Source of the DNA: Paraphysomonas bandaiensis
Taxonomy: Eukaryota; Protista; Chrysophyceae
NCBI GenBank assembly: GCA_965644295.1
Contig: CBFFRP010000397.1
Span: 1 to 64,000 of the forward strand
Length of the DNA: 64,000 nucleotides
Reading direction: 5' to 3'
Shown here: in pieces, positions 1 through 61,664 of the stretch
Layout of the letters: each line of letters starts with the position of its first letter
Position numbering within the stretch: position 1 is the first letter of the stretch
Notes under the pieces: generated by a model
Databases searched by the model: none
Told to the model about the DNA's origin: nothing
What the model saw: only the letters and a program-made list of their open reading frames with translations
Translations under genes and position numbers: made by a program

Positions 1-29
1 ATGTGTATGTGACTTTGAAATATATCTAG

Positions 30-3605: not shown

Positions 3606-3791
3606 TAAAGAATTGATCTTTATAATAGTAAAATAATGTTGTGATTATTAGAGTGTAAGTAATGAACACGATAGAGTGAAAATTATGAACAACAATATAG
3701 AACATAACTATCATGCACAACGGAATAGTTAGATCATGTATCTTCGACAGATACTCTCTCTAATTCAGTTCATGATATATTTCATTGAACA

Positions 3792-4427
3792 TTATAACTC
3801 ACAGATACAATCACTGAATCCTAATAAGTCTCTTCTGCCGCTTTTCCGCAGACGGAAAGGCTTTTCGGCGTCCGTGTTCACGTAGATGTTGTTCGGCGAC
3901 AACAACTTCTCAGGGAAAGTAGCCCCACCTTTCGTGACATGCGCCCTTGTCATATTAAAATCCCAGCTGTGCTCATCCTTGTACTGATCGAACACTACTG
4001 TTGGATTCTGTAGTATCGGCATCAAATTCTTGAAGCATGCGGTCATGTTAGTGAGACCTGTGTAAGGAAACCATTACCCAATACAGCATGAATGCGCATT
4101 ACTTATCATACCTTTCACGATCTCTACATCCGTCTCGACATCTCTGTCGCCTTTGTAGCCCATTAATACTTGGGCAAAAGTAGAATTTGTGTTCGGATAC
4201 TGCACGCTTAAACAGTACGCAAGTCTGTAGTGATATAGCACTGTTATGAACACATTATTGAAAGGATTTATTAATTCACCTGAGTATGTTGCACTCAACT
4301 CGGTACTGTCTTTCCAGATTCGACATTAACTGCACTCGCTTACTTCACAGGCCTCGTCTCTCATAGCCTGTGCCGAATCCAGCAGAGTCTCAGTATCTGT
4401 CTTGGATTGCTTTCTCTTGGCTGGCAT
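3792..4427 (-). CDS. Unknown intron-containing protein (MPAKRKQSK...), convergent with the Harbinger transposase; possible accessory gene
   Basis: ATG at 4427, basic N-terminus, ORFs 4074-4298 and 3792-4046 separated by GT-AG intron-like spacers. No recognisable domain. Confidence 0.4.
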
Positions 4428-5451: not shown

Positions 5452-5452
5452 G

Positions 5453-8150: not shown

Positions 8151-9010
8151 TGTAGTGAAACTAACTCAGTCGTATAATTTGCGCAGGTGGCATGAAACTC
8201 CTGCGACCCGTGACGATGGGGCAGGTGGTGAGGAGTGATCGATGCCGGCTGGGGGTGGGACACCCAACAAACAGTCTACGGCAGATGACTCATCATCAGG
8301 GAGTGAGCAGACTCCATGTGCCTTACCCGAGAGAAGCGTGAGCACTTCGTCTAGAGAGGCAAGTGTGTGTGTCCCTATAGTTGTCAAACTGCTAACCTGG
8401 CTGCTATAAGCAAGAGGGTACGCACTGATCATCAGACAGCAGACGTATTTACGAAATCGTTGTGTGGTGTAACTTTCGAGAAACACAGGAAGAGTTGTCT
8501 AGGAGAGGATCGAAATCATCTGTTGTGGTTTTTAGAGAAAATTCGTTCATACGACGTAAGTGATCAGTTGACTCTGCACTGAGACTAGCTGAAATGTCGG
8601 AGTCATACGTCCACCTGTTTGTCCTGTTTGGTTTCGGTGGTTGCGTATCCGTCAATTATATCTTGTGATGTGAAGAGTCTATCTACAGCTTTGAATTGAG
8701 AGGGTTGAGTTCTGCTATATGAGAGCAATTGAAAGCTGTAGTTATAAGATATTTAAATTACAGTAGTATACTGTTGTAGTCTTGTTAATCGTACTGTGAG
8801 AATGAATGACGATAAGTATAAAGTGGTAAAACGAAATATTATAGTGACGATACAAGTTTTAGTGACGAAGTAAGATCGTCGTGGGAGAAATGAGTGGTAG
8901 TAGAGAGACAACATAAAATTGATGAATGATAAGAGATGATTAAAATTTATAATTCTCAGCATTGAGTGTAAGTTACCTTCTGTTGTTAAGTTAATACTTC
9001 TCATATAATA
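8151..9010 (+). mobile_element. Copia LTR-retrotransposon 3' remnant (RNase H end, PPT, LTR)
   Basis: QTADVFTKSL Copia RNase H motif (8367-8582); purine tract TGAGAGGG at ~8697 followed by an LTR-like sequence; homologous to 15160-15390 and 19380-19984. Confidence 0.8.
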
Positions 9011-9871
9011 ATGTCAAACTTTGATATTCATGATATATTTCATTGACCATTTTTACTCACAGATACTACCTTATATTAAGCTGAATCCTAATCATATTAA
9101 CTTAAGATCAATATATCACTTGCGCATGGGGATTCCACATACTGCGCTCTGGCCTCCTTGCAGTTTATGGGTCGACTCGACGCGCTGTCCTCCATGGAGA
9201 AAGACACAATGCTACGCTGGTGCTTGCGAAGGTGGGTCCTATATTGGTCACGTTTTTCCGGTAACATTGACTTTCTAGGCAAGACTCTGGATTTTCTGGG
9301 CGGACCAACAAGACCAATGACACCTGCTACTCTCCTTCTGGATTGGTGCTTCTATTCACATCCTTGGATTTCCGCTGACGGATGTGTTATCAACCCGTGG
9401 GTTTGTAGCCGGGAAATGTCAGAGTGTAACCACTGGTGGGTTTGGAAAAACTCCTGCGGCACCTCCAGATATTCTCCATTCGTTTTATTCACTTGTATGC
9501 CTTTCCTTGGCCGAGGAACCCGGTACCCACATGATAGACACTTCCATAGGATTACGTCAAGATAGGAGCCCTCCGTTGTATCAACCCTAATTTATCTGTA
9601 CAATTTACGTGCATATTGTAATTGGATTTAATACAGTATTGATTTTTTGTGTGGGGTGGTTGCTCGTATCGATTGTTGGAAAAGTGATATCTATTTTGCG
9701 AACTATATTTCGAGCCAATATGGGGTGTAGTGTACTAAATTCATGTTGTCTCAACTACAAATCATTTCCATAAAATATTAGATAATATCACGATCTTATA
9801 AGGTCAATATATTTCAGTTTCACTACTATGCTTGCTATCATGACATTAGTTCTTACAATATAATGCAGTTA

Positions 9872-11460
9872 GGGAAATATTATTCAACCTACTAGTCAAA
9901 TTGGTTGAATTACCTCTAGTCACGCTATTTTTGGTGGAATAACCTAGTCAAAAAGTAATAAATGACTCAACCTAGTCAACTTTGGTATTCAACCTAGCCG
10001 TTCTTATATCCATTGATCACACCACACGATATATTAGTGGCTTACAGAGCATCAAAACACTCAAACATAACAACAAGCTCATATATATACATATCTACTT
10101 AACACAGGTGTACGTGTATGTCTATCTAGCCTATCTATAGCATGTAAGTATATAGCGATGGGTATCTGTGAGTGTTATATATACTGAGAGGAGGGTCCAT
10201 GAAGCTGTAGGTATAACTCACTCTATGATCCGCAGGACAACTTGAGATCTTCATAGTATGCTGTGAGTGATGGCGCTCATCTTCCTTCACTTCTCTGCTG
10301 AATGACTTCAATGAGTGCATTGGCTTTCAGGGATGCATAAATCCCCATGTTTCTAGTCCAACAAAGAAAATAAGAGGTTTTCAGGGAACAAGCTTGCGAA
10401 AACAGCATCATTGAAGTGGACTGTAGGCAGAGTGTAGAGCTGCAGCAGAACATCAGAATCATGAGGAGCGTGTCTCTCATCAGTCTTACAGTATCATGAG
10501 GAGTGTGTCTCTCATCAGTCTTTCTATTCTTCAGATCACGTACTTTCAGCCTGCCTTACGGATATGTCGTATTGTGGATTCAGGCCCTCTGAACTGCAAT
10601 CGCATGACTAGGTTTTATATTGTACTGATGCTTTTTAGTAGAGTACTGATCACTCTATTATATGTAGGTACCACAGCATATATATGTTGTAAGGGAGGTC
10701 TCTTATAACATCAAGAGCAAAACCTATATTATTATCGTTCTTGTCTACAACTGTCCGCGGCTGTGGGATACTAGTAGCTATTGATCCTACCTCTAGCCGT
10801 GCATCATTTGTGAGATCCTACTCTGCATATATATATCACAATATATTTTACGATCTTGTGACTGTTAATCATTGTAGGACACAATATATTTTACAATCTT
10901 GTGAGTGCTAATCATTGTATGACAGGCACCACAGTATAATATTATGTATGTCGTACGGGAGATCCCTTAATGATCAAGCGCAAACCCAATATTGCTTGTG
11001 AGGTACGTAAAATACATTTATAGCTCTCTACATATCTTAATTATGTGCTCAGGGGACATGATGTGAAGCACATGTTGATTTCCATTTAGACTCTCACAAT
11101 GCAGCGAGGTCCCTCATCAACGGTGAACCCACCGATGTCATGACCCTTGGGAAGCTATGGAACTGCACCGGACATGGTCACGAGAAACTGTCCAATTCTC
11201 ATTGGAATGCAACGTTATAATGTTATGTATTGCATGTATACAATATATACATTTATTAATTAATGGCTAGAGTATGCTCCCATGTTTGAATGCAAACTTT
11301 TATTTTTGACTAGGTGAATACCATAAACACCTAGTCATTGTAAACTAAAAATATGAATTATTAAATGACTAGGGTTTTCAACCGCTTGACTAGGTTTTTA
11401 CACCAATTTTGGTGTGACTAGGAAACTACACCAATTTGACTAGGTCCAATAATAGATCCC
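9872..11460. mobile_element. Non-autonomous Mutator (MULE)-like element inserted in a reverse-oriented LTR
   Basis: 10-bp TSD AATGCAGTTA (9862-9871, 11461-11470); imperfect TIRs GGGAAATATTATT...CTAGTCAAATTGG / CCAATTTGACTAG...AATAATAGATCCC with repeated CCTAGTCA units; LTR-like sequence continues on both sides (9720-9870, 11470-11545). Confidence 0.8.
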
Positions 11461-11991
11461 AATGCAGTTAACCACTTCTGTATTCTTCCATTAACAGTCA
11501 TAAGTCAAATATGTTTGAACTACAGCTGTCAATTGCTCTCAACGGATTATTAGAATTCAATGCATTCACATTCCATGTGGTTGAGGAATACACTACTTGT
11601 CATGGTATACACTGATCATAAAACAGGTACACCCGTTATCATGGATGAATAAAGCAGAAGTAGGCGCCGATACAGTGCACATTAAATAAAGTATTCTTCT
11701 ATACATAAACTATCCTGAATAGAATACTTTGACAGGCAATCAAATTCCAATCTAAAATATGGAAAACAAGTCGAGGGTCAACCGACACACTGAGAATGAT
11801 TCACCCATAGTCAGATTGCGCCTTGTCGTTTGCCCGAGGGTGCTGTGCAGTACTGCATGTTACACTACTTTCCACTTTCAGTTGAGGTACATACCATTGT
11901 TAATGACTCCCCGCCCACTGGCGCCCCTAAGGTCGGATATGCTGTATGACATAATATAACTCGAGTTTTGACAAATCATATGCAATAGATA

Positions 11992-12450
11992 TCACTGTAT
12001 ACCATGCGTATATAACAGGACACACCTACTTGTCCCTTGATCGTCGCTTCCAATTTCAATATCATCATCCTCAGGCAAAACTTCGAAAGCAGATTCTTCT
12101 CTTCTCTTGGATTTCTTTTTCTTTTTAGAGGATGAAGCCTTCCGACTTAAATTCGCCGCCAAACGCGCCATTTTCTTTGTTTCCCTAATTTCTTCTTCTG
12201 CGTGTATGTGTTCCATGCACGAGTTGCCAACGTACCCACAACATATAAATATTCTTGCAAAGTAAAGCAACACTACATCTGGTAAACATACCCCAAATAA
12301 ATTTTTCAATGATAATCCCAACTTTTGAGGACTAAATACTTTATTTCCTTCACCGTCATCCTCACGAGATTCAAACCACAAGTACAATATTAATAGAAAA
12401 AGTAGGCCACCAACGACACTAATGACTGTCGCGCTGGTGTGCTGCGACAT
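11992..12450 (-). CDS. Small hypothetical membrane protein
   Basis: N-terminal hydrophobic helix (VISVVGGLLFLLILYLWF), Lys-rich then acidic C-terminal part; 3' exon uncertain. Confidence 0.45.
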   Translation of the reverse strand: MSQHTSATVISVVGGLLFLLILYLWFESREDDGEGNKVFSPQKLGLSLKNLFGVCLPDVVLLYFARIFICCGYVGNSCMEHIHAEEEIRETKKMARLAANLSRKASSSKKKKKSKRREESAFEVLPEDDDIEIGSDDQGTSRCVLLYTHGIQ

Positions 12451-12997
12451 TCTTAGATGATAAAAATATATATCGTCTTTGACATGCACCTCTATAGTGT
12501 ATATTCTCTGCTCATTATGTCCTGCGGTTGAAACTACTGTATCTACATTGGTGCTGTATGGTACATATTATATATGCTGTGTGTTTTATACATATATATG
12601 TACTGTCTACCAATGGAAGTGTTATCTATTGTGGAGAGTAAAAAATAAATGAAGCTGTATTACAATAAGAATACAATAATGTAGATGACAATACGGAAGT
12701 GGACATTTAAAAAAAAGAAAAAAAAACGATCTATGTAAAAAGCAGGATTTTCGAGAAAAAAACAAACGAAAATATCCGATCTGGCAATGTGTCCCTTCCC
12801 TGAAACAGTCCACGAAGGAATACTGTGTACAGTGGTAGTATACCCATCATGCTGTACAGTACCAATGCATTATAAGTGATTGATTGCATAACCACTGTCG
12901 GAAGTGCCATAGATATTGACTTGAGCTAGAACAAACACGCAGGCAGACGCTCTGTCGTTACAGTAACGCTAATCAACATATAGCTGTCGATCAAGTA

Positions 12998-14019: not shown

Positions 14020-15696
14020 GAGTCGATAACTAGCTTATGATCATTCTTTAGTTCTGCTAGGTAGAGCAATGTCATGCTGCTGTATATTGTACCGTCTGCT
14101 TTCCGGTAGTAAAAGAGTCGATATTTACTGGCAAACTATGCCAGGAACCTGATAGAGTCGTCTTTTTGTTGGACAATCTAACTGTGAAAATAATCAAGAT
14201 AGAACACTAATAAACACGGATTTTTTCTTGTAGAGTCTCTTGTTGAGTTTTGCTGTTTGGGCAATTAAAAGCTGTAATTCTAAGGTGTTGGAATTATGAC
14301 CGTTAGTCGAAGAATACAGTAGTGATGAGCTGTATTATGAGAAGTGATATCATGACGATGTAAGATCGTACTAGAAATGAGTGGTAGTAGAGATAACGTG
14401 ATATATTTTTTATTATATTTATTATAATCTTCTCTTATCTTAACTTGATTAACGAGTAAATAAACGTCCAGTTAACGTAGTAAATCATCCAATTGTGTCA
14501 TATCTTGGCATGGTAGCGGATGGTAGTTGGAAGCAACTGCTGAAGTGTGACCATTGGAGTGTAACTGGACAGAGAAGCAGCAGTCCATACGACTTGTAGG
14601 GCTGCTGCTTCGTACAGTAGAAACATACAGTATATAGAATATTTTAAGTATTATTTATGAAAATCGGGGGTTTTCATACGAATATAAGACAGAAAAAGTA
14701 GACTGGAAAATGTGACTGACGTTGAAGTGTGTATCGTGGTTGATGACTGTATGAACCCTCTGAAGAGACCCCATGTAATTATCAGGATATCTCATGTGCA
14801 TGGAGTGTGAGCACGATGATTCAGTAATGTGTCTGATTGTGTTGATAGGGGTGTAGTGCTATTGATGGGAGTGCAAGTGACCAGGAGTCGTGTCCATTAT
14901 GACTATATATGATGATAAGAGTAGTTCCTCATGAGATAGATGGATTGCTATCGATTATGCTCGACAGGATGAAGAGTTCAACCATTTAATCGAACCATAC
15001 CGTCATGAAGCCTTCCTGTTTAGAGCTGCGAGAGTCGTAGTTCGGAAGGGTCCGCTTGTGGCTTATAGAGCCTTAGTAACTGCTGGCAGAGAGCAGTTGG
15101 AGGAGAACTCCATTGCATGTTGGGAATGTTGTATCTTTAACCAATATGTATATACGCTGGTGGCACGAAAAACCTGCGACCCGTGACGATGGGGCAGGTG
15201 GTGAGGAGCGATCGATGCCGGCTGGGGGTGGGACACTCAAACAGTTTATGGCAGATGACACATTGGGGATAGAGATCCCAAGTGCCTACCCGAGAGAAGC
15301 GTTAGCGCTATGTCTAGTAGAGAGTCAAGCGTGTGTGTCCCTAGCAGGAGTAACGCTGCTAACCCGACTGCCTCAGGCAAAAAGGGTACGCACCCGAAGA
15401 GTTGTGACTAATGTGTCCACTCTGGGTGAGATCAACTTCCTATGTGGGGAAGATGCCGTTCACCAGTGGAGACCAGTGAGAAGAGTGTATGAGGCACATG
15501 TGTATGTACTGCATCGACGGCGTCTGGGGAGACCAGTAAGAGTTGTGTTGGTACTGTTCGTATTATATCTAGTGAGATTTGTGTGAATTCTGTCTGTGAG
15601 ACACTGTACCTGCTGAGTCTAGTAGGGAAACTTGTGTGGTAAGTGTACGGGTGTTGACTAGTGTGTCCACCCTGGGTGAGGTAAACCTTCTATTCT

Positions 15697-17487
15697 ATTA
15701 TCCTCTACTATTTAGCGCTACAGAAGCTGCTTGTGCGTCGCCGCAAGCACCAAGGTGCGACCACTTCCGTTCTTAATGTTGTTTGTGCGTTTCGCCCTGC
15801 TCGTGTGTCTTTGGACGCGTTGTCCGGGGGTCTCCCCTTGGGATGAGATTCCACCAGGCTCTGAGGTACGAGGTTCTGTATTAAGGTCCTGAGTGTACCG
15901 AGCACTAGATGTGTGTGCTGAGAGGTGGATGGTGTGGTGTAATGTGGCGTTGTCGCCATGCACCGTCTGGGCGTCAGGCATATGTGGAGTTGCCGGAGAC
16001 GGCGTCGCCGCTGTCTAGGGCCTGATGGTTTCATGCGGTCCGGTGCTATTTTCCTGTGTGTATGAGTGGTGGGGTTCGTGTGTGCAGTGGGCGGTGTTCC
16101 AGTCTCGGTTTTCGTCTGTGGATTCCTAGTAATCGTAGCACCCTTGGACGTTTCCATTTCTGTCTATGTTTTGGACGCCTTTGCGTTAGTAGCCTCGGGG
16201 GTCCTTTCTGTGGGGTGACGTATCGTCTACTTCGATCTTGGATCATGAGCTTTGCTGCAGCGAAGTAATCTGATGACCGCTGATTCGATGCTGCGCAGTC
16301 CTTGGGGTGTCAGTGACTCATGGATGTGATCTCCAAAACCGTCTCGAGTTGTGCAGTTGTGATGGTACCCGTCCAGAATCTCTCCACCTGCGGAACGGAG
16401 GGATTCCAGGCCCTGCTGGAGAGCCGCTGTAGTGCAGTGGTGGTTCATTGGGGTAGTACCGGATTTCTCAGTTCTTCGTGAAGCGCGTTTTTGTGACTGT
16501 GAAATGCAGACTCCCTTATCTGCGTTATGGCGTCATTTGTACAGTCTAGACACATGTGCTTGAGTGAGTCTAGTCAAAATCCGCAGTCAGAACATGCGGC
16601 TTTAGCCAGGTCGAGTCCGTGTTTGGTTTTAGCCCGGTTTCTTCCTATGCTGAAAGATTTGTCCCATGTCAATGCTGCATTGAGTACTCGCTGGCGCAGG
16701 TGGGAACTATCTTTATCCTTTGATGGACCACCATCTGCTTGTGCCAGTTTGCGCGGAAGTAGTGCCCCACTGTCTGTCCAATATCCAGGTGCCCGGTCGG
16801 GATTGTGACCGTAGCGTTGGTCTCTGAGGGCAGTGTATGCCTCCAGCGTCCGTTGACTGCGGAGGGATTGGAAGTCCGTGAGCAGGGCGCTCGCGCGATG
16901 CGGCCGTCGTTTCCCGGTTAGGCGCCAGTGCCATAAACCCTCGGTGAGTATTCGCTCAATTGTTTGGTCCACTTCTATGTTACAGACAGTGTAATTTTGT
17001 CGTCCCAGTAGTATATCTACCTCAAGCCAGTCCTCTCCTGCTACTGCGTCGGCAATGTAACTTTCTTTGTCTTCATATGTCCATTCAGATTCATCCGAGG
17101 TACGTCGTTCGGGGTGTGATCGTACCCATGCTACGTTCCTTTTGTACAATCGTTATTTGCTGCAATGCTTTCGAGCAGTACACCTTTGGCACGATGTCCC
17201 AGTGCCCGACGTCTGGTAGAAAGTGCTTCGTGTGTGCGTGTGCATACGGCCTTACAGTCCGTGTTTATCGGTATGTGTGCAGGGAGCCGCGCAGATAGCA
17301 GCCCCCATGAGTTCGTATGCATACGGGCCAAGTCCAGGGACGTCGCTGAAGGGTGTCTCTAATCGCAGTATTTTTGTGGTACCGGTCTTCCATTCATCCT
17401 CCGGGGGGAACCAGACGGCCGCCGCTCCTCCATGATGTATCCATCTTATGCGTGGGTGTACATGCGTGAAGCCGAGAAGGTTCATAT
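15697..17487 (-). mobile_element. LINE remnant of the RNase H-bearing family
   Basis: GGAAAV, YELMGAA, NTDCKAV, WVRSHPERR, YIADAVA, CSDCGF knuckle and PKGRPPD; homologous to 5535-7838; 3' UTR hairpin at 15728-15749. Confidence 0.88.
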
Positions 17488-17529
17488 CCTTCTAACAATA
17501 CCCCTATGACTCTACCAACAAGATAGGTT

Positions 17530-18082
17530 CTAGCAGAGTCCTGCATCTCAACATTTCAATGCAGATTTAAGCTTAGTAATAGTAAGAAGGAAGTTTAGAT
17601 TATTATGTTGGAAATTGCTCATTCTTAACTAGAGATCTCAGAGTTAATTTGTCGTTAGACTAGATAGATTAATTAATATCGTTTACACGAAGTTGTAGTA
17701 AACAACACAATCTCATTTTGTTCCACGCATAATCTTCTACATCTGTAAACCTCTCGTTACTTGACATATCTTGAAAGATCAAATAATTTCAGTTTCTCAA
17801 TTTCATCACAACATTTGCAATTACCTACGAAGAATAATGTAAGAAGACAATATTACATCATCGCGCCCAATCGCTATCGCAGTATCCTGATAATGTTATG
17901 ATGTGGGATCCAGAATATATCAATCCTTGCTTTTAGCAGTGTCTTTGAGGTACCTCAGGACATGATGATGATGTAACGCAGCATTATTACAGGTAGTAAT
18001 TGAGTACCTTGCCTTCGGGAATGTTCAAACCAGCAGGAGGGCGCATGTAGATGTCTTCTTTCTCAATGTCAGCATTTATGTA
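17530..18082 (-). mobile_element. Second Copia fragment, reverse orientation
   Basis: Minus strand reads YINADIEKEDIYMRPPAGLNIPEGKV (Copia RT); LTR-like AT-rich sequence near 17530-17700. Confidence 0.65.
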
Positions 18083-19678
18083 GTAGTTAAAACTGACCAG
18101 TCAGTTGGATCGGTCAGTTGAAGAGTTCAACCACCTGATTGTGGCTCGTATCATCATGATATTATAAACAAAGGGTTCCTCTTCAAGGCTACGAGAGCCG
18201 TGGTGCGAAAGGGCCTGATTGTGGCGTTTAGAGCGCTGGTCACTGCCGAGAGAGAGTAGCTTTTGAAGAGAAGGGATATTGCCTATATAAGCATAATATT
18301 ATAAGGGATATTGCCGAGTTGACTCTGGCCAATATATTAACCGCAGGGGCTGTACATAAAACCTCGTTCTTTTGTAACGACAGGAGAGGTGGATTCTCAT
18401 CGATGACTTCTTTGAGTGACACGCCCAACAAGTCTACGGCAGATGAAAGTTCAGGGAAGTGTATGTCCCTTGGTATTTTGCCAAATAGAGCGTAGTGCAG
18501 ATGCTGTACCAAGTGGGGCCAGCGGAAATAATTGTGTCTGTAAAATGTACCTTTTGTGTTTAGTGAGACTAGAGCGGTACTGTATATTTTGCTGAGTCAG
18601 GGGGGACCAGTGGTAAGCGTACGCAAACCCGAGGGGTGTTGAATAATGTGTCCACCCTCTGGGTGAGGTAAATCTTCTCCATCATGATGATGAGGAGATT
18701 GCTAACTTGTGTAATGAGAGTGATTATGCGCTTATGACTATAACTCATCTACTAATTATAGAGAGCCTGAGACATAGGAACAGTCTTTGTATTGTGTCCT
18801 GAAGCTTCGAAGTGGATGGAGGCAAGAAGGTTGGAACAAAATGTTTATTCAAGTGGGAAGCAATCAATCGATGTCGTAGAAACTCCGTCTGGTGTTCAAC
18901 CTTTAAAGTTCAGATATGTTGTGTTTAAGCAAAAATACAATAAGGATGGTTCAATAAAGAAATATAAAGCTGCACTAGGATATGGTCAACGGTCAGGTAT
19001 CCATCCACTTGACGGGTCCAATAATGTATTCTGCTATGCTAAAATCGAAGGAGATGTGTACATGGCGGTCCACTCACCTGGCAATTTATTCATAATAAAT
19101 TACAGGTTACTGTGTCTACGTCTTCAATGCAGAGTGAGTATCAGGCTATGTACGCTGGAATGTAGGAACTGGTGTGGCTTCGAGGGTGTTGGCCGAATTA
19201 GGACTTTGACTGTACGAACCCACTCCGTTCTTCCTAGATAGCCAGAGTGCCCGTGATTTAGCATTAAATAATCCCGCGTTCCACTAAAGATCAAAACACA
19301 TTGAGATCAAATACTACTGGGTGCGAAAACATGTAAATCCAGAAGGACCATTTAACACTGCAATTTTGTATCACGTTGGAACTGACGACCAGACAGCAGA
19401 CATATATTATTTACGAAATCTCTGTGTGGTGTGGTTTATTATAGAAGCACAGAAAGAGATGTCTAGGAAAAGATCAGAAATCATCTGTGGAGGGCATCAG
19501 CGAGAATTCATGCAAGCGTAGTAGAAGTTCATAAACATGTTGTCTATATGGTCAGGCTAGCTAAAATGTCGGAGTCATATGTCCACCTGTTTGTCCTAAC
19601 TGGTTTCGGTGGTTTCGTATCCGTCAGGTATGCCTTGTGAAGTTAAGAATCTGTCTACAGCTTTGAATTGAGAGGGAG

Positions 19679-19984
19679 TGTTGAGTTTTGCTGTTTGTGA
19701 GCAATTAAATGCTGTAGTTTCTAACCGTTACTCAAAGAATACCGTATTATGAGTACCAATGATATGATAGCTATTGTAGTTCTGAAAATAAAATATAATG
19801 ACTATTATACAAGATAGTGACGATGTAAGATCGTAATAAAAATGGTTGGTATAGTAGAGATAAATCGAATTGGTGAATGACAATGAATGATGAATGATAT
19901 CTCTTATAATTTATAATTCTCTGCTTAAGTGTTTATCTAAGCTCTCTTACTAAGTTCAACTACTAATTATGTCGTTGTCTAACA
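19679..19984 (+). repeat. Copia 3' LTR (306 bp)
   Basis: TGTTG...AACA ends directly after the PPT; closely similar to the solo LTR at 37674-38008. Confidence 0.85.
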
Positions 19985-25759: not shown

Positions 25760-26005
25760 CTTTATCTCTAATAATACCAAGTGTATCTACTAAATACCAA
25801 GACTAGCTTTAAATCTTATTTATCACTATTATCAGATTTTAGATAGATACGATATTATACAGTCTACAGTCAATATATTTCAGTTTCACTACATAATTCA
25901 TATTATCATTAGTTCATTTTATACTGTTAACCAGTACTGTATTTTCTTCAAGTAATGGTCATAATTCAAAATACGTTAGAACTACAGCTTTTGATTGCTC
26001 ACAAG
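25760..26005 (-). repeat. Copia LTR copy, reverse orientation
   Basis: ACAGTCAATATATTTCAGTTTCACTAC...GAACTACAGCTTTTGATTGCTCACAA is the reverse complement of the LTR at 37674. Confidence 0.7.
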
Positions 26006-26282
26006 TAGTGAATGTCTAATTATTCGCAATAGGCGTTTAAGAGTCAGAACTAATTTAGCATTGCAGTTTAACTAACCAGTGGTAATAGTGAATGTCTTGT
26101 TTTGAGTCAGAACTAATATAAGTAACGAAAGCTGCTTGTTCGCGACCCAAGTAACAAGGTGTAACCACTTTTAGCAAAGCAAAACCAGTGCGCAAGCAGA
26201 ATGTTGATATAAAGTCAAGGAAATACCAAAACCTAATGGTTCTTTTATGATGGTCGGAATACGGTATAACTATGCACAATAA

Positions 26283-27263
26283 GTATATATTGAATGTCTT
26301 ATTATTTAGCAATAGGCGTTGAAAACCTGCACTAATTAGTGACTAGAAGAATACTAGACATACTATTTAGACCTCTACCCGTCACTAATCAATAATTACA
26401 CAACCTCTTTTATCCTACTATTTAACGCTACAGAAGCTGCTTTTGTGCGTCGCCGCGAGCACCAAGGTGCAACCACTTCTGTTCTTTTAGTGTGTGTGTT
26501 ATAAGGCTCGCCATGCTCGTGTGTCCTGTGACTCACCGGCGCGTGTGATCTGGAGGTCTCCCCTTGGGATGAGACTCCACTGGGTTAGGAGGGGGCTCAG
26601 GGTTTTGTATTATTAAGTTCCAGAGTGTAGCGAGTTCTAGGTGGGTGGGCTGTGAGTTGGATAGAGCAGTGGGATGAGGCGTTGAATGTGTGGGCACTGA
26701 TGCTGTGCTCTTTTTGGACCTCTGGAGTAGATGGAGTTTCCGGAGACGGCGTCTTTGGGGGGGTCTGGACGGTGATAAAGTTATTTGGATTAGGTCGGTG
26801 GAATATGTGTGTGAGGCGGAAGGTGGCGCAGTCACGGGTCTTCTGTGGACCCCTATAGTAATTGTAGCACTCTCGGACGTTTACATGGCTGACTCCTCTT
26901 TTCTGACGCGGTCGCGGGGGTAACCTAGGAATTCCTTTGTGCAGAGTGATGTAACGGCGGCCGCGATCCTGTAACATTAGTAGCTTCGCTGCAGCATAAA
27001 GCGGTTAAAGTAGATCAATAACCGCTTTTTCTAGGTGTCGAAGACTTTTCTAGTTGTGTGTACACGTGGTCTCCAAAGACCGTTTCAAGTTGGGCTGTTG
27101 TGATGGTTCTCTCTACCTGCGGGATGGAGAGATTCCAGGCCCTACTGGAGAGTCTCTGTAGCGCATTTGTGACCCAGTGGGGTTGGGTCTGCTCTATTTG
27201 TATTTGTTGGAGAGCATTTTTGTGCCTTTGAAAGGCAGTCTCCCTTATCTGGGTGATGCACAA
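26283..27263 (-). mobile_element. 3' fragment of an RNase H-family LINE with complete 3' UTR
   Basis: Homologous to 15700-16525; PKGRPPD motif; the tail 26283-26480 aligns with 60264-60455. Confidence 0.85.
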
Positions 27264-27578
27264 AATAAGTAACTATGAACATTTAACAATATGTTGTAAA
27301 GATTATTATTTATAATATTTTTTATTACTTTCTTATACGTACTATTTCTCAGTTTTACAGCAATGATGTGATTATTGTTGTGTGTTGATGTGGTTACTAC
27401 TGTATTAACTGTGTATTATAATGGTAGTAGTCAAGAAGAGGTGCAACGGAAAGAAGAATTCGTGACGACTAATCCGGCGACGACCCAGAGAAAGAGGTAC
27501 CACTACGAAAGCGCAAGGGCAGGGTATGTAACACTGTTCATAAAGATGGTGGCGGGGTCGTCGAATTCCAGCAGAAAA

Positions 27579-28001
27579 TCCGGATGCTTGACTTCAGTAG
27601 GTTGCCCAATACCCCGCGGATGCCCTTGAGGTGGGCCCATCCACGGATGTCTGTTTATTCGTCAGGACCCAAAAAGACGTCTACTACTCAAGTTATATTT
27701 TAGTGTTCCTTGTACCATACAAGCATTCGGCTATGTATGGGCAGAACGATATAATTATATTTATGCTCCATAATAATGGGCTGACTATATATATTATGCA
27801 GCTTACATTAGTTTCCCGGAGAAATATCTCGCGGGACAAATTAACATTTTAGAAATACTCGTAGAATATAATATATATAATTTTATAGCTTTCTTTCAAG
27901 AGTCCCAAATTTGAAAATTTTCCCCACGGTTGTCTTATTATATAAGGTTGCTTTTAGAGAGAACAGCACGAAAAGGTGCGAGTTCGACTTTTTGTTGAGG
28001 G
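27579..28001 (-). mobile_element. Short ribozyme-headed element copy, interrupted by ~130 bp of unrelated DNA
   Basis: 27961-28001 is the 5' half of the module and 27579-27830 the remainder; 27831-27960 is unrelated. Confidence 0.75.
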
Positions 28002-28499
28002 TTTGAATCCCCCTTCTTGTAAAATGGAGCTTTGGTATAGATTCTTTCGTATTAATTATAATATTATTATACAAAATGTATAATATAATATATATATTAT
28101 AGTTATATACTTCTTCTACGCTCTTAAAAAAGTAGGGTCTAGCAAAATAAATTTTTGACCAGATTACCCCCATCATATGACCTGCAGGTTTGGTCTTTGC
28201 CATATATATAATATTATTATATATAGTAGACTTTACACTGTATGTCATACAGACAGTCTTTATACACTGTATTGCTGTTGTACGCAATCGAAAGCTGCAG
28301 TTCTAAGGTACTTCGGAGTATGTTGTAGTTAATACCAAAACTCTTCAGGTAATATTTTAAGGCAAAATAATTGATTGTTTTTAATACGGCCTATTTGTAC
28401 TGGGTTGCACCTCTAAACCGCTCAATCAACCATCAACCCAGCAACGATGTCGCTAATATATCTAATAGCTCTTTTTCGGAGATATTACATCGTAAGGAA

Positions 28500-28587
28500 C
28501 CCTCAACAAAGTCGGACTCGCACCTTTTCGTGGTGTTCTGGGGGATAAGTACCGGAGAGATTCTCTCTGGGAAACTAACGTGAGCCG
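28500..28587 (+). ncRNA. Candidate HDV-like (Pr77/ingi-type) self-cleaving ribozyme
   Basis: Hand fold: P1 CCCUCAAC / GUU(CU)GGGGG; P2 CGGACUCGC / GUGAGCCG; P3 ACC/GGU; L3 UUUUCGU; P4 CCGGAGA/UCUCUGG; J4/2 GAAA-C-UAA with putative catalytic C at 28575. Confidence 0.65.
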
Positions 28588-29705
28588 CAAACATAGTCAG
28601 CAGATATTGTTCTGCCCACTCATAGCCAAATGCTTGTGTGATACAAGGGACTCTATAAAGTGTCACTTGTGTAGACGTCTTTGGGCCCTGACGAATAAAC
28701 AGGCATCCGGGAATGGGCCCACCTCAAGGGCATCCGGGACAAGGCCCACCAGAAGGATAACCGGGGTATTGGGCTGCCTGCTGAAGTTAAGCATCCGGGA
28801 TGTTCACCTTAAGAACTCAAAACACCTGAAGTCAGCAGATGTCAGGTATATCAACATTCTGCTTGCTCCCTGCGTTTGCTTTGAGTGATTGATGCTGAGT
28901 ATGAGTTCACATTATTCGGTATCTGTGTGGCCAATGACCGAGGTAATGCGTCAAACTTTCCTCATGGATGCATGGCAATGGCAATGATGTGATTAGACCT
29001 GTCATGTCTTCTCACACGTCTACTGCCTAGTCTTGGTTTCTCCTGACCCAGGTCATTGAGATTATATCAAGGCTCTGGCACTGTTCTCCAAGCAGTGTCA
29101 GGTACATTTGTGGTGCTTTTATGTTATTCTTGCTTAGTAGGTTTTCATCCGAGCGGGGAAGGTGCACGGTTTCCTACTAGTGTAAGTCACTCGGGAGAAG
29201 AGTGCAAGGTGGATGCATGTGCTGGACGAGTGCACACAATGGAGGGAAGACATTGGAGTCAGCTTGAATTTGTAACAGATTTTGGTAGATGTCTGTTTCA
29301 TGCGTCAGTGTGCAAAATTGCACCAGTGAGACCGCTTCGTGACCGTGGGAGGACCCGGCGCTATAGAGCTACTTTATTCTCCCTTCCAGACTACCTGCTG
29401 CTGTGAACACCACCTTGAAGAGGGCCCTAAAGATCTGCCGCATATACAGGAGACATATGCCGAAGACACCGACCGCAAGTTGTTTGTGTTAGGACAAGTA
29501 GATTGGGCAGGAGCGTATGATCCGGCTTAAACACGCAACTCGTCGTATGCCCATGTAGCTAACTAAATCGTGTTGTATAGTTGAACACTTGTCGGTGCAT
29601 GCAATAGTAACTAGATGAGAGTCATGTTATGCCTAGTGTCGCGCGAGTTGTTAGGTTGGTCGCGGCAACGCACAAGCTTGCGCTTCTTAATAATCAGATT
29701 TTCAA
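28500..29705 (+). mobile_element. 1.2-kb ribozyme-headed non-autonomous retroelement with TSD
   Basis: 14-bp TSD TACATCGTAAGGAA at 28486-28499 and 29706-29719; starts CCCTCAAC; ends GCGGCAACGCACAAGC...TAATAATCAGATTTTCAA. Confidence 0.88.
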
Positions 29706-30912
29706 TACATCGTAAGGAAGAAGCATGTCCTTCTCTCGAAAGCTTCTTGGTGCATTTGATTACTTCGAACCGATAAAATTTTGGATGCAGTTTCCAGTCC
29801 GAACTATCATGCATGTTATTATCCAAAATAAACAATTTTGTAGGATCATGGCTTATAAACAAAGAACTGATCAGAGTGTATACTCAACAGTCAAACATTT
29901 ACTATTGTGTTGTCTCTCTACTTGCAATCTATTTTATCAGATTTTAGATATAGTCATGATCGTATTTCAGTTTTACTATAATAGAATTCATAATATCATA
30001 TATATATTATTAGTTCATGAAATAAATGTAATACTGTTACCCACTACTGTGTATATTCTTTAAGCAACAGCCAGAACTCAAACCTTAGATATATTAGCGA
30101 TATCGTTGCTAGGTTGATGGTTGATTGAGCGGTATTCTCTGGTCTTAAAATATTACCAGAAGAGTTGGTATTAACTACAACATACTTCGAAGTGCGTACT
30201 TGCTTGTAAGCTTTTTGCTAGTAGTTATCCTGGATTCTGTGTAGCAATGAAATGTAGAATCTACAAAAATACAACAGCAGGAATAGGCATTAAATATTAT
30301 GCACATATAACGCTGTTAAAGCTAAATAATATAACTTGTAAGAAAAATATTTTAGTTTGTGATCGATGTGTTGCTACAAATAACCTACAACACAACCTTC
30401 TTACTATCTCTCCGAATATGTATAATTCAGCAATACATAGTGCCTTCAAAAGCCCAAATTAATAATAGTTGGTATGTGGAGCGATACACCGTCTCAGCTG
30501 TACAACCCCAAAAATGGCGGAGTTGGAGGATCCCCACGGATGTGTGTAAACAAATGACAGCACAACACCACAAAATGATAAAGTTGGCCCTTTAACTTTT
30601 TCTTACTCAAACTGCAAATGTATCTAACCACCATACTATTAATAGCTTTTGCTGGACTTGTCTTTTCAAAGTCTATAACATTTGGCGGTGTTGGCCACCT
30701 ATCTATAACATGGTATTCCAATACCTGTTGTGATACCTATCAGGTAAGTATAGACTAAACGTACCACTACAAAACTCCTTTAGCTGCAACGCATTCCATA
30801 CTACTTCACTAAGTATATACACATGTATGTTCATTACAAGAATATTCAGTGAATTCTAAAACCGGGGCAAATCCAACACTAATACGCGGAAAAGTCAAAA
30901 ACTTACATACGA

Positions 30913-37673: not shown

Positions 37674-38008
37674 TGTTAAGTTTTGCTGTTCGTGAGCAAT
37701 TAAAAGCTATAGTTTCTAAGATATTTGAAGTATAACCGTTACTCAAAGAATACAGTAGTAGCGAACCGTATTATTATGAGAACCAAGGATGTGATAGCTA
37801 TTGTAGTACTGAAACTGAAATATATTGACTGTACAAGATAGTGACGATGTAAGATCGTACTAGAAATGGTTGGTGTAGTAGAGATAAAACGAGTTGGTGA
37901 ATGACAATGAATGATGAATGATATCTCTTATAATTTATAATTTTCTGCTTAAAGTGTTTATCTAAGCTTTCTTACTAGTTCAACTACTAATTATGTTATT
38001 ATCTAACA
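37674..38008 (+). repeat. Solo Copia LTR
   Basis: TGTTA...TAACA ends; 5-bp TSD ACCTT/ATCTT (one mismatch); similar to 19679-19984. Confidence 0.88.
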
Positions 38009-42452: not shown

Positions 42453-42725
42453 TCGTTTATACCACTGCTAAATGCCGATATGAGTTTTGAACATCACAGG
42501 ACATATGCTGCTTTAAATAATAGGCTCCAAATATTTTAACACTCTAGCCTGATGAAGTATATATGTGAATGACCCAATCATTTTGAACTAGAAACTACAC
42601 TTGAGAAAATGTGTCGGATCTATAAGTAGTATGCAGCATTCTATATATTAAGTATGTACTAGTTCACGTAGAAATATTCTACACTTTAGCGGTTCTAGCT
42701 GATTACCACACTCCATCTAATGTCT

Positions 42726-42998
42726 CCCTCAACAAAGTCGGACTCGTACCTTTTCATGGTGCTCTGGGGGATAAGTATCAGAGATATTTCTCCGGGAAAC
42801 TAACGTGAGCCGCAAACATAGTCAGCATATATTGTTCTGCCCACTCATAGCCAAACGCTTGTGTGGTACATGGGACACTATAATAAGTATCACTTGTGCA
42901 GACGTCTTCGGGCCTTGACGAATGAACAGGTATCCGGGAATGGGCCCACCTCAAGGGCATCCGGGACAGGGTACACCTCAAGGGTAACAGGGGTATTC
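42726..42998 (+). mobile_element. Ribozyme-headed element copy, 3'-truncated
   Basis: Aligns to 28500-28770 from the first CCC. Confidence 0.85.
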
Positions 42999-43238
42999 AG
43001 TTTCATTCTACAGTAGTAGCTATCATGTTGTTAGTTCTCATAATGCTGTTAACCAATACTGTATTCTTCGACTAACGGTCATAATTCCAATACCTTAGAA
43101 TTACAGCTTTTAATTGCTCAAACAGCAAACCTCAACACTTCCTCTAAATTTAAAACTGTACACTGAATCTTGAAACCACGAGACATAACTCACGGATAGA
43201 ATTACAGCTTTTAATTGCTCCAACAGCAAAGCTCAACA
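42998..43238 (-). repeat. Copia LTR/PPT fragments, partly duplicated
   Basis: Two copies of AATTACAGCTTTTAATTGCTC..ACAGCAAA.CTCAACA; PPT complement CTTCCTCT after the first. Confidence 0.7.
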
Positions 43239-44814
43239 GTACTAGGCATAAATAGGGCTAGGTAACAATATATTGCAGTTCCCTATATTGTTCCCTAGCC
43301 CTGGTAAATAAATCGATTCTAGATGAAAGTGTTTGAATGAAATTAAGACTTCATTCTCAACTACACACAGTTTTAAGTTCTAATGTGTACTACTGCACCG
43401 TGCACAAACATGTGGTTTCATTGTTGTTAATAATAGTATAATAGTGAGTAATATTATGCAACCAGTTTATAAACTACACGATAACACAATATATCTCTGC
43501 CTAGCTGACAGGAACAAGATTATTTCAGACAAAGGAAGCCTACAGAATGTGCCAACTATTCCAGTAGAGTTGCGTAACTTGTGTAAGACCGTAAGGGGTA
43601 TAATTGTCAACTTGAGCGTATCCTATCAAGGCTGGTACATACTATCTACGCTCTTGGGCGAGAGATGATGCCATTGTATTCACTGTTGACCAAGAAGCGC
43701 TCGCAGATTTTATACACAGACATTACTCAGAGCTGCGGTTTAGTACTACTGAGTCTAGTGAAGGACTATAGACATGTGTAGTGCACTCCCTGTGTCTAAT
43801 AATCTCGCACAGTAATCGTTCAATCAGTGAAATCAGTCAACGATGCAACATTCATAATGATTTTATGTGTAAAGCCAAACCACATGACAACTTCTGCAGT
43901 ATTCAGTGTTGTACTCCTAGCTAAGCAACCCTTTCGCATTATAGTATTGGGATAAACGGGGTTCCAGTTTGATAGTAATGGGAAAGGGGAAAATGTGAAA
44001 AAGGGGATTTCCCATTCTTTTTGCAAGAAACCACCTACGAACGTTAGATTTTTTCATATCTTGAAGAGTCCTCCACCAAATTTGTGTTGAACTTTCGACA
44101 GAGAATTTGTTTATTTTGACTGGTGATTCCTGCCCCATATAAATATTTCGATAGTGGGGTTGTGGATGAGGTACAACAACAGTCACTGATGTTGTTATAT
44201 ATATCAACATACATATCAATATCCAGTTTGGTATCTATATATTAAATATAATATATCAGAATGATATCGTGAGATCCATTCTATTACTTTTACTAGAATC
44301 GCGCTTCATAGCTGTTAGAGTATTATATCATTTTAGAGAATCGATTTTGTTAAACTATGTCAAGATCCCCGCAATTAGAGGTTTATATTAATAGTACTTA
44401 ATAGTAGACTCATGTAACAAATATTTTAATAGAGAACTGTAGGACTGTTTTGGGAGAAAAGTGGGATTGATGGAAACAATCCCATTGCACTGAGCCATGT
44501 TTTGTACGACATTGCGAAGTCATTTAGTTCCGCTGGAAATGTCGATATTGCTGAAATATTCATGCCATCTGTGACTGAGGAAGAAGAGAGAATGTTTAAT
44601 GAGATTGGTTTTGAGGTATTTGATATATTATGAAGTATATGAATTACTCTCATATTATAATAATTAGGTTATTGAAGAGACGCAAGAGAATGTTATCAAT
44701 GGACGATCTTTATTTTGTCGAATTCTATTGTGGTTATGGGATACGGAGCGCACGCAGAAGAACACACAACTTCCCTGTGTTGTTCTTGTAACAAGAAATA
44801 ATGACTACGCCTCA

Positions 44815-51045: not shown

Positions 51046-51454
51046 CAGGTATCAACATGCATGCACAAGAAAGGACTGCGGAATGCGTAAATGGAATATT
51101 CATGCATCATAGCATGTTTGCTTCTCAATGCTGTGCTGTAGTGAGTTATGGGTAGTCACTATTCTGGTGTTATAGTTATCGGACATCAAATGATCTGTTA
51201 GTCGTATATTGCATCTTTTGCTACTATAGATGCTGTGAGTGGGTGCAAATAGGTTTGGCCACTAAAGTGTGCATGTGCGTTGCTAGAGTGCAGAGAGGAT
51301 TTGTTGTGATCACGGTGTACTTAAATTACTGATACAAAGGGATAACGTTAACTAAGCATATTCTGGGCTATCACAACGAAGCAAATTCCTCTTATTTCAA
51401 TGCCCGAGACTAAATATTCGATTAGTAGTGTTGCAAGAGTAGTGCCTATCTAAC

Positions 51455-51630
51455 TTTTAGCAATAGGCGTGTCAGAGTCAGAACTAATGTAGCATTGCAA
51501 TTTAACTAAGTAGTGCTGAGCTCTGATATCCTACTACTATTTCACGCTTCGAAAGCTGCTTGTGCGACACAGCAAGCACGAAGATGCAACCGCTTTCGCT
51601 CTATCACTCAAAGCAATCGTAGTGAGCAAA
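51455..51630 (-). repeat. Isolated LINE/short-element 3' tail fragment
   Basis: GCAATAGGCGTG...CCTACTA..TTTCACGC...GCTGCTTGTGCG matches 59505-59680 and 59920-60080. Confidence 0.7.
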
Positions 51631-58986: not shown

Positions 58987-59504
58987 ATGTACTTTGAAAC
59001 TGTGAAGCATTAACGTCGATGTTTTATATTTGTTATCATGCGACTTGGTCCACTTAAAAGCTTTTCGTGTACGCTTGAAAACGCACGAAAGTATTTTGAA
59101 AATGTGTACCACATTGTCTTTCTATAAATATGCGTGAACATATTTGTACTGAATAGCGCACCGATATATATAGAGCTAGTCTCACATTTTGTTCCTTACG
59201 ATTTTCACAATCAGTTGTTCATGTTAGGAAACACATATCACTAATAACTATTAACTTCTAAATCGAAGTCTCTTTTATCACCTGATGTTACATGAATATG
59301 TTGTGAAGTGTTTAGATTAATAATAAATAAAAAGTATATATATATACAAAATACAATAGTGAAAGGTTTGGAAATCTTCGAAACATTTAGCATCCGTTAT
59401 CTCGAGAGTTACCAACTTGAAAGTGCAACGTGTTCAACAAAGCAAGGTTAAGGTTTAAGGTTTAAGTATAGTGCAAGGTCAACTTCAGTGAAAGTCCAAT
59501 TCTA

Positions 59505-59886
59505 GTCGTGTACGAGTCAGGACTAGTTTGGCATCGTCATTTAACTAACTAGTGCTTAACTTTGATATCTGAAATCCTACTATTTTACGCTATGAAAGAT
59601 GAAAGCTGCTTATGCGTCACTGCAAGCATCAAGGTGCAACCACTTTCGCTCAATCGCTCAAAGCAAACGCAGTGAGCAACAGGCAGAATGTTGATACACC
59701 TGACATCTGCTGACTTCAGGATTTTTGAGTCCTTAATGTGAACAGCCCGGATACTTGACTTTAGCAGGTGGGCAGAAAATTATCTACTGACTATATATGC
59801 GGCTCACGTTAGTTTCCCGGAGAAATATCTGCGGTACTTATCTCCCAGAAAACCACGAAAAGGTGTGAGTCCGACTTTGTCGAGGG
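59505..59886 (-). mobile_element. Internally deleted ribozyme-headed element with LINE tail
   Basis: Starts CCCTCGAC at 59886; tail hairpin ~59606-59628; flanked by direct repeat GTCCAATTCTA (59494-59504, 59888-59898). Confidence 0.78.
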
Positions 59887-59904
59887 TGTCCAATTCTAAA
59901 ATAT

Positions 59905-60262
59905 AGTAGTGAATGTCTTATTATTAGCCATAGGCGTGTAAGAATCGGGATTTATTTGGCATTGTCATTTAACTAACTACTGCTTAACTCTGATATCTGA
60001 TATCCTACTATTTCACACTATGAAAGATGAAAGCTGCTTATGCGTCACCGCAAGCATCAAGGTGCAACCACTTTCGCTCTTAAGTATGCGTGAGATGCTG
60101 CCCTTTGGGTTCTTAGTGATCCGCGAAGCTTAAGAGAGGACCAGAGGCCAGAGTTATGTAGATGGAAGGATTATGTTCCATGGGTGAGTTAGATGGTGTG
60201 ATGTAGAGGTGTAGAATCTGTAGATTTGGGGGCGCCGCTGGCCACAGAGTGTAAGTTGTTGC
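59905..60262 (-). mobile_element. LINE 3'-end fragment
   Basis: Complete tail (GTCTTATTATTAGCCATAGGCG...GGTGCAACCAC on the plus strand) preceded by degenerate coding-like sequence including a PKG motif. Confidence 0.6.
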
Positions 60263-60263
60263 C

Positions 60264-60749
60264 ATATATTGAAAGTCTTGTTATAAGCAATAGGCGTTAA
60301 AAACCTGCACCAACGTAGTAGCTAGATGAATGCTAGACAAACTAGTTAGACCTCTACCTGTAACTAATCAGTACACACTTTTTCAATCCTGCTATTTAAC
60401 GCTACGGAAGCTGCTTGTGCGTCGCCGCAAGAACCAAGGTGCGACAACTTCCGCTCTGAGTTCTTAAGGTGAACATCCCGGATGCTTGACTTCAGCAGGC
60501 AGCCCAATACTCCGGTTACCCTTGAGGTGGGCCCATCCCCAGATGTCTGTTTATTCGTCAGGGCCCAAAGACGTCTACACAAGTGACACTTATTGGTGTA
60601 CCTTGTCCCACACAAGCATTCGGCTATGAGTGGGCAGAAGAATAGCTGCTGCTTATGTTTGCGGCTCACGTTAGTTTCCCAGAGAGGATCTCTCCGGTAC
60701 TTATCCCCCAGAACACCACAAAAAGGTGCGAGTCCGACTTTGTTGAGGG
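60264..60749 (-). mobile_element. Apparently complete ~490-bp RIME/NARTc-like element: ribozyme module joined to LINE 3' UTR
   Basis: 60460-60749 matches 28500-28818; 60264-60455 matches the 3' UTR of LINE 26283-26480. No clear TSD. Confidence 0.85.
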
Positions 60750-61664
60750 CACAGAGAGACCATACAAACGCAAACTTTACTATATCCATATATAAGGTAT
60801 ATGCTACGTATATCCCTCTATTCATACACAATTGTATTATGTCGTATTATGTTGTGGATATGACACACAGAGGGTAAAAATAGAAGTTACTATATCTTAA
60901 TTCATCATAGTTATATTACGCTTTATCAGCACTCTGCGTAATAAATTAAATTTCAAAGTTGCATATCTGTCTATATCAAACATAACTGAGTCAGATGTAA
61001 GTATTTGTTCAGAGTTTTGAATATTTGTGAAGTGAAGTAGTATAAGTAACATCCAGTGACAACTAATAGGAATGGTATGCATTAGTCATACCAGTCTAGT
61101 CTTTCACTACGTCAGTATTGTTTCTATCTTGTTCATCTACTACTCGTTGCAGTTCTATTATACAGCTGGATGTATGATGTACAGTGAGTAAGTGGCAGTA
61201 TAATAACAACCAGAAGCAAGTGTCAATACTAAGATATCATGCTGCCGAATATATCTTCATATCCCTCCCTTTATCTATCTCACTATCTACCTGCCAACAT
61301 GATCCTCATATCTACAGCAATACCTCCTGATCCATATATCTACAGTGTATCTAGGCATGACCTGTTGACTAAAATTGTATACTTTTTATGTCCTATATAT
61401 CGCTTTTTTTGTTTATATTACCTTTTTCTGTTCCAGTTGTCCTCAGAAATGGGGATATCTATAGATATGGGATGAAAAAAAGCGTCCTACGAGTCGTACT
61501 GTAGGAGTATATGGACTCTGTATGTACTGTAGGACTGTGTGCTGCTGCATATACATACAACAGACAGCAACAGGCAGGCAGTATATACAAGCTGCCTCAT
61601 ACACATCACAACAGAGCGATCAATCCATAGAAACTCGTTCTTTATTGATACTTTAACAGTCAAG

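Follow-up and report, generated by a model that had tools for sequence, protein, structure and literature searches.

A dispersed family of short non-coding retroposons with a LINE-derived tail and a conserved head, a candidate ribozyme and/or promoter, in a marine planktonic protist

Introduction

Short non-coding partners of LINEs are common, and to our knowledge partners whose 5′ end comes from a self-cleaving ribozyme instead of a Pol III promoter are known from few lineages only, namely the trypanosomatids and insect R2. In stringent-type SINE/LINE pairs, typified by UnaSINE1/UnaL2 of the eel, the two partners share a 3′ stem-loop and the SINEs have tRNA-derived Pol III heads. A hammerhead is present in the schistosome Sm-alpha SINE. 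Schistosome LINEs, for their part, have twister variants at their 5′ ends (PMC8501958).

In the trypanosomatids, an endonuclease/RT/RNase H LINE is accompanied by short non-coding elements whose 5′ end is exact (NARTc/L1Tc, RIME/ingi and the SIDERs). Both L1Tc and NARTc begin with ~80 nt that act as a promoter and as an HDV-like ribozyme, the latter starting at C1 and having a minimal, 1-bp P1.1 (PMC3185411, PMC3383444, PMC4035085); downstream promoter elements lie at +25 to +28 in L1Tc, with the sequence CGTG, and at about +28 to +32 in Drosophila (PMC4748587). The R2 SIDEs of Drosophila, as described in PMC3414825, are non-autonomous, retain the 5′ self-cleaving ribozyme and the 3′ end for target-primed reverse transcription, originated by internal deletion, and include hybrids with different 3′ ends.

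Here we describe an element, copy A, from a 64-kb stretch of DNA (“the window”, 64,000 nucleotides), and the family to which it belongs. As in the trypanosomatids, a short non-coding unit with an exact 5′ end is paired with an endonuclease/RT/RNase H LINE, and a putative HDV-like topology can likewise be drawn from C1. The differences are that the head is ~290 bp long, as against the 77 nt of Pr77 in L1Tc, that the tails have no poly(A) end, and that the host, a marine planktonic eukaryote in which both strands carry genes, is not evidently a kinetoplastid. The family resembles the UnaSINE1/UnaL2 type in its LINE-shared tail, which contains a conserved stem-loop and ends, in place of poly(A), in a short motif, but differs from it in that no Pol III head is detectable. 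Whereas R2 SIDEs, going by the account in PMC3414825, are site-specific in rDNA and few, the copies of the present family are dispersed and apparently number in the thousands, and the ribozyme is only a candidate. With the schistosome retroposons it may share the idea of a small self-cleaving RNA that processes a non-LTR element or its short partner; the ribozyme classes differ, and searches with Rfam of the window and of 60200–60800 gave no match to twister or hammerhead.

Results

Copy A joins a family-specific head to a LINE-type tail

The sequence-only reading of this locus had proposed a ~490-bp head-plus-tail unit, and this is reproduced both by a BLAST comparison of 60201–60800 with the window and by the window self-comparison. 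Together with multiple alignment and a search for flanking duplications, these place copy A, a non-autonomous element, at 60250–60749 on the minus strand: a ~290-bp head runs from 60749 to 60458 and is followed directly by a ~190-bp tail from 60457 to 60264. The head (60458–60749) is common to five further copies in the window (B to F) and to four metagenome contigs (L001, L009, L010, and L011). The tail (60264–60457) matches the 3′ end of a LINE fragment, at 26285–26485, with 82% identity. Copy A is short and non-coding; the one longer open frame across it, a chance ORF of 155 codons, matches no Pfam family.

The BLAST matches have E-values from 1e-23 to 1e-111 and therefore are not chance. 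The head of copy A (60457–60749) matches 28500–28819 (86%, 320 bp), 44–424 (82%), 42726–42964 (86%), 27580–27746 (83%) together with 27960–28001, and 59768–59886 (85%). The tail (60264–60457) matches 26285–26485 over 202 bp, and its start (60389–60457) also matches 15705–15773 (91%, 69 bp), so that the alignment with the LINE 3′ UTR claimed beforehand holds at both places. The first ~70 nt of the tail are found again at 51534–51602, 59573–59651, and 60031–60080. At the head/tail joint of the type seen in copy A there is an 8-nt microhomology, TTAAGAAC.

The 5′ boundary of copy A is the start of CCCTCAAC at 60749. A weak, possible target-site duplication of 7 bp (60750–60756, partner 60243–60249) abuts CCCTCAAC on the 5′ side, while its other half lies 14 bases past the conserved tail end at 60264; if this duplication is accepted, the 3′ limit of the copy is possibly 60250 instead of 60264. 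In the comparison with assembled contigs, nearly all other copies differ from copy A at many positions, and copy A is thus old and diverged.

One head is combined with several bodies and tails

All six heads (A to F) share a single start base, with the sequence CCCTCAAC, or CCCTCGAC in copy F, and in the multiple alignment the sequences upstream of this base are unrelated. Copy B (28500–29705, plus strand) is a 1.2-kb non-coding element with short ORFs only, in which the same head is followed by another body and a related tail, and it is flanked by a perfect 14-bp duplication (28486–28499 and 29706–29719). Copy C (1–423, minus strand) was delimited by alignment and self-comparison; it consists of head and tail with the same head–tail junction as copy A, and its 3′ end lies beyond the window. 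Copy F (59505–59886, minus strand) has only the first 120 nt of the head, then a segment shared with copy B (28777–28892), and then a tail of another subfamily. The earlier claim that the copies at ~30–423 and 59505–59886 have a head with a related but different tail is thereby confirmed, with the first of these copies at 36–423.

Copy D (42726–43378, plus strand) has the head and then a body broken by another repeat, with a possible 8-bp duplication (42716–42723 and 43379–43386), and copy E (27577–28001, minus strand) is a degenerate head interrupted by an insertion. Two copies have lost their 5′ parts, both on the minus strand: copy G (59905–60090) is tail-only, with copy F inserted just past its 3′ end, and an F-type element found by self-comparison (51438–51629) has the end of the body and the tail. 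One head is thus combined with several bodies and tails (A, B, and C/F types), and this, together with the microhomology TTAAGAAC at the joint, suggests that new combinations arise via template switching or internal deletion.

Several features of the window were seen alongside. Copy C has an 8-nt insertion, GCATGACG, at 393–400 (element positions 24–31), within the candidate P3 region described below, and the inserted bases repeat those (…CATGACG) immediately upstream of this copy's own CCCTCAAC start. The repeat that interrupts copy D belongs to a different short family (77–93% identical, containing AGAATTACAGCTTTTAATTGCTC) that recurs across the window, at 14241–14355, 43023–43137, 43197–43238, 37674–37819, 25909–26001, and 11461–11538. 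Another dispersed repeat, at 8182–8743, recurs at 15155–15393 and 19381–19719 (76–80%), and one copy adjoins the place near 15692 where a LINE tail breaks off. The region 6001–8000 has a skewed composition (GC 0.51, GC skew −0.28, AT skew +0.29) and long plus-strand ORFs without a Pfam family.

The copies are dispersed as retroposons

Retroposition of the family is well supported by duplications, 5′-truncated copies, unrelated flanks, and a very high copy number. Copy B has its 14-bp duplication, copy F one of 11 bp (59494–59504 and 59888–59898), and the LINE copy at 26285–27255 one of 13–15 bp, to which copy A adds only its weak 7 bp; at the two ends of the element the duplications adjoin CCCTCAAC and …TTCAATAT, respectively. 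The truncated copies at 59905–60090 and 51438–51629 have the pattern expected from 5′ truncation in target-primed reverse transcription.

Contigs of four public runs were placed on the stretch at 80% likeness. In DNA run X1, 29,210 contigs were placed, and their summed depth is 33–40 over unique flanks and climbs to 1.9e5 to 3.9e5 in the head and at the junction; summed depth is not a copy number, so only “thousands of copies” is taken from it. At 60749, 101 contigs (DNA run X1) and 145 contigs (DNA run X5) break into flanks without a consensus, and at the tail end 59904/59905 another 56–66 do the same, so both ends are sharp and the flanks are independent.

Further copies were found indirectly, by searching a protein collection with chance ORFs of the head and fetching the contigs of the matches. 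L001, a Tara Oceans scaffold, has at 69–1278 a sequence 99% identical to element B, in another context and inside an inverted copy of the head, which points to probable recent activity and to a family nested in itself. L009, a marine metagenome contig, has the head with a new flank. Two more marine metagenome contigs have the A-type head–tail junction, L010 (positions 1–430 of copy A, 87%, with a different 5′ flank) and L011 (positions 45–363, 82%), so the A-type combination is a family and not a one-off chimera. Exact-pattern scans with two head motifs gave nothing in JGI metagenomes, IMG/VR, or GTDB genomes. That the host is a marine planktonic eukaryote is indicated by the Tara Oceans contigs and by runs under several coded species labels, which contain 24–82% of the words sampled from the locus.

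These data bear on the readings in which the unit is not a retroposon of the stated orientation. Segmental duplication, for which missing target-site duplications and shared flanks would speak, is excluded: within the window the copies have unrelated flanks, more than 100 contigs show the same, and a metagenome contig with the A-type junction has a different 5′ flank. For an LTR or DNA transposon of which the head would be a part we see no sign, and the ends of element B are neither inverted nor direct repeats of each other. The element could also be turned around, with …GTTGAGGG the common 3′ end of a plus-strand element; taken by itself, a sharp end common to all copies opposite a variable one would fit 5′ truncation. 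This is contradicted by the coding remnants of both LINE fragments, which are on the minus strand with the tail downstream, by the truncated copies, which keep the tail and lose the head, and by the duplications, which abut the CCCTCAAC and …TTCAATAT ends, and we regard this whole group of readings as the least credible of those considered here.

Two runs, which we guess to be RNA, have contigs across 60721–61293, that is, the upstream flank of copy A and 28 nt of its head, at 13–50% of the depth of the neighboring C2-domain gene. Such contigs across the 5′ boundary are either uncleaved read-through or DNA carry-over, and do not speak of cleavage.

The tail is derived from a co-resident RNase H LINE

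The window has two fragments of the LINE, both on the minus strand. The first (26285–27255) is a 5′-truncated copy with a 3′ coding remnant and the 3′ UTR, and its flanking duplication (26272–26284 and 27256–27270) has sides that differ by a 2-base indel. The second (15692–17491) comprises a divergent RNase H (~17491–17050), a C-terminal region, and a 3′ region, and its tail breaks off at ~15692; running upstream from 15692 to 17491, it enters an ORF with RNase H-like motifs. The 3′ region of the second fragment is 67% identical to 27258–26406, and the two are collinear over ~850 bp. On translation both fragments are similar in minus-strand frames, and the tail lies downstream of the coding remnants, from which it follows that CCCTCAAC is the 5′ end of the short element.

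Pfam searches with single sequences did not recognize the RNase H of the LINE ORF. An exhaustive HMMER search found 24 relatives of the RNase H/C-terminal ORF, and a profile of 16 of these, compared with PDB sequences, matches RNase HI chains only (best E = 0.0024) and covers the E, D, and H motifs. RVT_1 lies upstream of the matching region in three of the 24 relatives (P0014, P0019, and P0024), and contig L007 has an Exo_endo_phos ORF in front of its LINE-related region. By these predicted domains, the co-resident endonuclease/RT/RNase H LINE is real, and the homology of the tail to its 3′ end, as first put forward from the letters, is upheld.

Sought via the RNase H/C-terminal ORF, no full-length LINE of this family was found within the window or the fetched contigs. 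The close matches to the LINE ORF are contigs of less than 1 kb, while the long LINE contigs (L005–L008) come from other organisms, mostly richer in GC (0.55, 0.57, and 0.45 for L006–L008), are only distantly related, and have no DNA similarity to the head or the tail. We also considered copy E and the adjacent LINE fragment as one head-plus-LINE element and rejected this: nothing matches the intervening 320 bp, and a 13–15-bp duplication flanks the LINE fragment alone.

This evidence bears on where the head comes from. The short elements may be internally deleted LINEs, that is, SIDEs of the RIME/ingi or NARTc/L1Tc kind, with a head that was the 5′ untranslated end of the full-length LINE, and this reading differs from the explanation that we favor solely in the origin of the head. 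The known ribozyme-headed partners had such an origin, as reported in PMC3414825 and PMC4035085; the head joins LINE-type tails at several points (A/C, F, and B types), as repeated deletion or template switching predicts, and the A-type joint has the microhomology TTAAGAAC. Set against these are the LINE fragments of the window, neither of which reaches a 5′ end, the head of copy E, which beside 26285–27255 is a separate insertion next to a LINE fragment with its own duplication, and the related contigs L005–L008, which belong to those other, GC-richer organisms. We rate an internal deletion at only a little short of an even chance.

Whatever the source of the head, the tail homology makes mobilization in trans by this particular LINE most likely. 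That the unit is a non-autonomous partner of the LINE had been proposed from the outset; the two-part design, the LINE-derived tail, and the retroposon-like dispersal stand, and the trans-mobilization is what the homology of the tail would imply.

Three further observations concern the surroundings and relatives of the LINE. Just upstream of the truncated LINE fragment, at 17990–18100 on the minus strand, is a short copia-type RT-like frame (…EKEDIYMRPPAGL…), in what is a nest of retroelement pieces. L006, a 38-kb metagenome contig with a distant LINE relative, has a same-strand ORF array of ~11 kb (1501–12955, with RVT_1 and a weak Peptidase_C48), ahead of which (1270–1490) lies a long, near-perfect hairpin with sub-threshold matches to many generic miRNA-precursor models. 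The 3′ untranslated end of another distant relative, on L005 (2861–3100), contains …AATAATTAGATTTTC, which resembles the terminal motif of the tail (AATAATCAGATTTTCAATAC in element B).

The tail starts with a conserved stem-loop and ends in a common motif

At the start of the tail, within its first ~50 nt (60404–60454, minus strand), is a stem-loop that is conserved in all tails and in both LINE fragments. Across seven sequences, 95% of the cells are paired, as against 29–77% when the structure is slid along the alignment as a control; three pairs (5 cells) are changed on both sides, and none of 500 shuffles reaches the covariation score. The stem-loop falls within the deepest contig bin, 60398–60491, which includes the last bases of the head too. 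At their other end the tails have a common …AGAC(T/A)TTCAATAT motif, without poly(A). The stem-loop fits a 3′ recognition signal that the LINE and its partners would have in common.

The head begins with a conserved segment that may be a ribozyme, a promoter, or both

The first 90 nt of the head (60660–60749, minus strand) are its best-conserved part, being more conserved than the remaining head in 15 of 15 pairwise comparisons, and are an unproven candidate for an HDV-like ribozyme and/or an internal promoter. In element numbering, the HDV-like fold that can be drawn has P1 at 1–6/40–45, P2 at 15–22/81–87 with one bulge, P3 at 23–25/33–35, and P4 at 53–60/64–71, with J4/2 at 72–80 (GAAACUAAC) and a candidate catalytic C at 76. 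The candidate C76 is within the most invariant block of the head, GGGAAACTAA, which comprises J4/2 and P2′, and P1 begins at the very base set as the 5′ end by the duplications and the contig breaks. The drawn fold has an atypical linker of 3–4 nt between P3 and P1, and its P1.1 is 1 bp at best.

Written post hoc, a descriptor that combines this topology with a C-N-R-A rule matches 55 of 127,740 window positions, among them the exact starts of copies A and B; a looser version matches 702 window positions. In the drawn fold 95% of the cells pair, yet it does not stand out against shuffles: none of its pairs is changed on both sides in the eight distinct sequences, and pair-breaking substitutions are about as many as pair-keeping ones. 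For the first 95 nt, nested folding gives an unremarkable energy (z between −0.3 and −1.8). Rfam gave no ribozyme or small-RNA family in the window at the gathering score, in 60200–60800 (601 bases) at E ≤ 10, or in eight fetched contigs; the HDV-like models of Rfam are narrow, so this is weak evidence against a ribozyme.

We also compared the head with L1Tc directly, rebuilding L1Tc +1 to +77 from the primers printed in PMC4748587 and PMC3185411. The two have short collinear blocks in common (CCCT, CACC-N-CGTGGTG, AGTAC, and GAA(A/G)CTAA). In a global alignment, however, 302 of 2000 shuffles score as high, so that the similarity to Pr77 is not significant. The head has CGTG at +30 to +33 in most copies (TGTG in copy A) and not at +25 to +28.

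The proposal that the head is of the ribozyme/promoter kind thus survives in part. The lack of Pol III features, the HDV-like fold from nt 1, and the conserved 90 nt speak for it, while a match in Rfam, two-sided covariation, and a thermodynamic signal are all lacking. A self-cleaving ribozyme in the head is plausible on the modeled fold, and unproven; that nt 1 to ~90 would be an L1Tc-type HDV-like ribozyme cutting just before C1 we hold to be a serious possibility that falls somewhat below an even chance. About as likely is a Pol II-type promoter within the element that starts transcription at C1, with or without a ribozyme.

In its exclusive form, the promoter reading has no ribozyme at all: the sharp 5′ end comes from an internal Pol II-type promoter at C1, and the conserved 90 nt are protein-binding DNA. 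Internal promoters of this type are those of jockey and the I factor and the promoter function of Pr77. A segment conserved without compensatory changes, Rfam match, or energy signal is what such a promoter would leave, and the CGTG of most copies is near the positions of downstream promoter elements (PMC4748587). But four bases are weak evidence and in copy A they read TGTG, a nested double pseudoknot exactly at +1 is rare in the window, and the two functions coexist in L1Tc (PMC3383444); we regard a promoter without a ribozyme as possible and clearly short of even. We consider it rather unlikely that the head is a working dual module of the L1Tc/Pr77 type, with a promoter and an HDV-like ribozyme, beyond the trypanosomatids, and that the A, B, and C/F types use it as an exchangeable 5′ cassette.

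The remaining source of such a head is a Pol III gene (tRNA, 5S, 7SL, or snRNA), which would make the family a classical SINE. The missing A and B boxes, already remarked on from the letters alone, are borne out, as ARAGORN finds no tRNA in the window, usable A/B boxes are lacking, and no Rfam family appears. The general SINE design of a foreign head with a LINE tail would suit this origin, as would one A-box-like 11-mer with one mismatch at head position 123, but there is no B box in the sense orientation, no Rfam small-RNA family comes up even at E ≤ 10, and 290 bp is long for a Pol III head, all of which makes a Pol III origin very improbable.

Discussion

We think it probable that copy A is an old, diverged member of a very abundant family of non-coding non-LTR retroposons with a LINE-derived tail, copied by the LINE. 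A family-specific head of ~290 bp, always starting CCCTCAAC, is joined to a tail of ~190 bp homologous to the 3′ untranslated end of the LINE. The reverse transcriptase of the LINE would recognize the RNA of the tail, by its stem-loop and terminal motif, and the element would then be copied in trans by target-primed reverse transcription. The head would serve to give the RNA a precise 5′ end; in the version with a ribozyme, cleavage just before C1 would free the element from read-through transcripts. Broadly speaking the element is a SINE, a non-LTR retroposon that is non-autonomous and has a tail derived from a LINE and constrained in structure.

What is secure will help annotation, in that the ends, the orientation, the modules, and the LINE partner of the family are defined, and the family would account for a sizeable share of the repeats in this genome. 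If the ribozyme is real, an abundant and recently active ribozyme-headed family in a marine planktonic protist would broaden the known range of such elements, and it would offer many natural variants for testing the L1Tc-type ribozyme.
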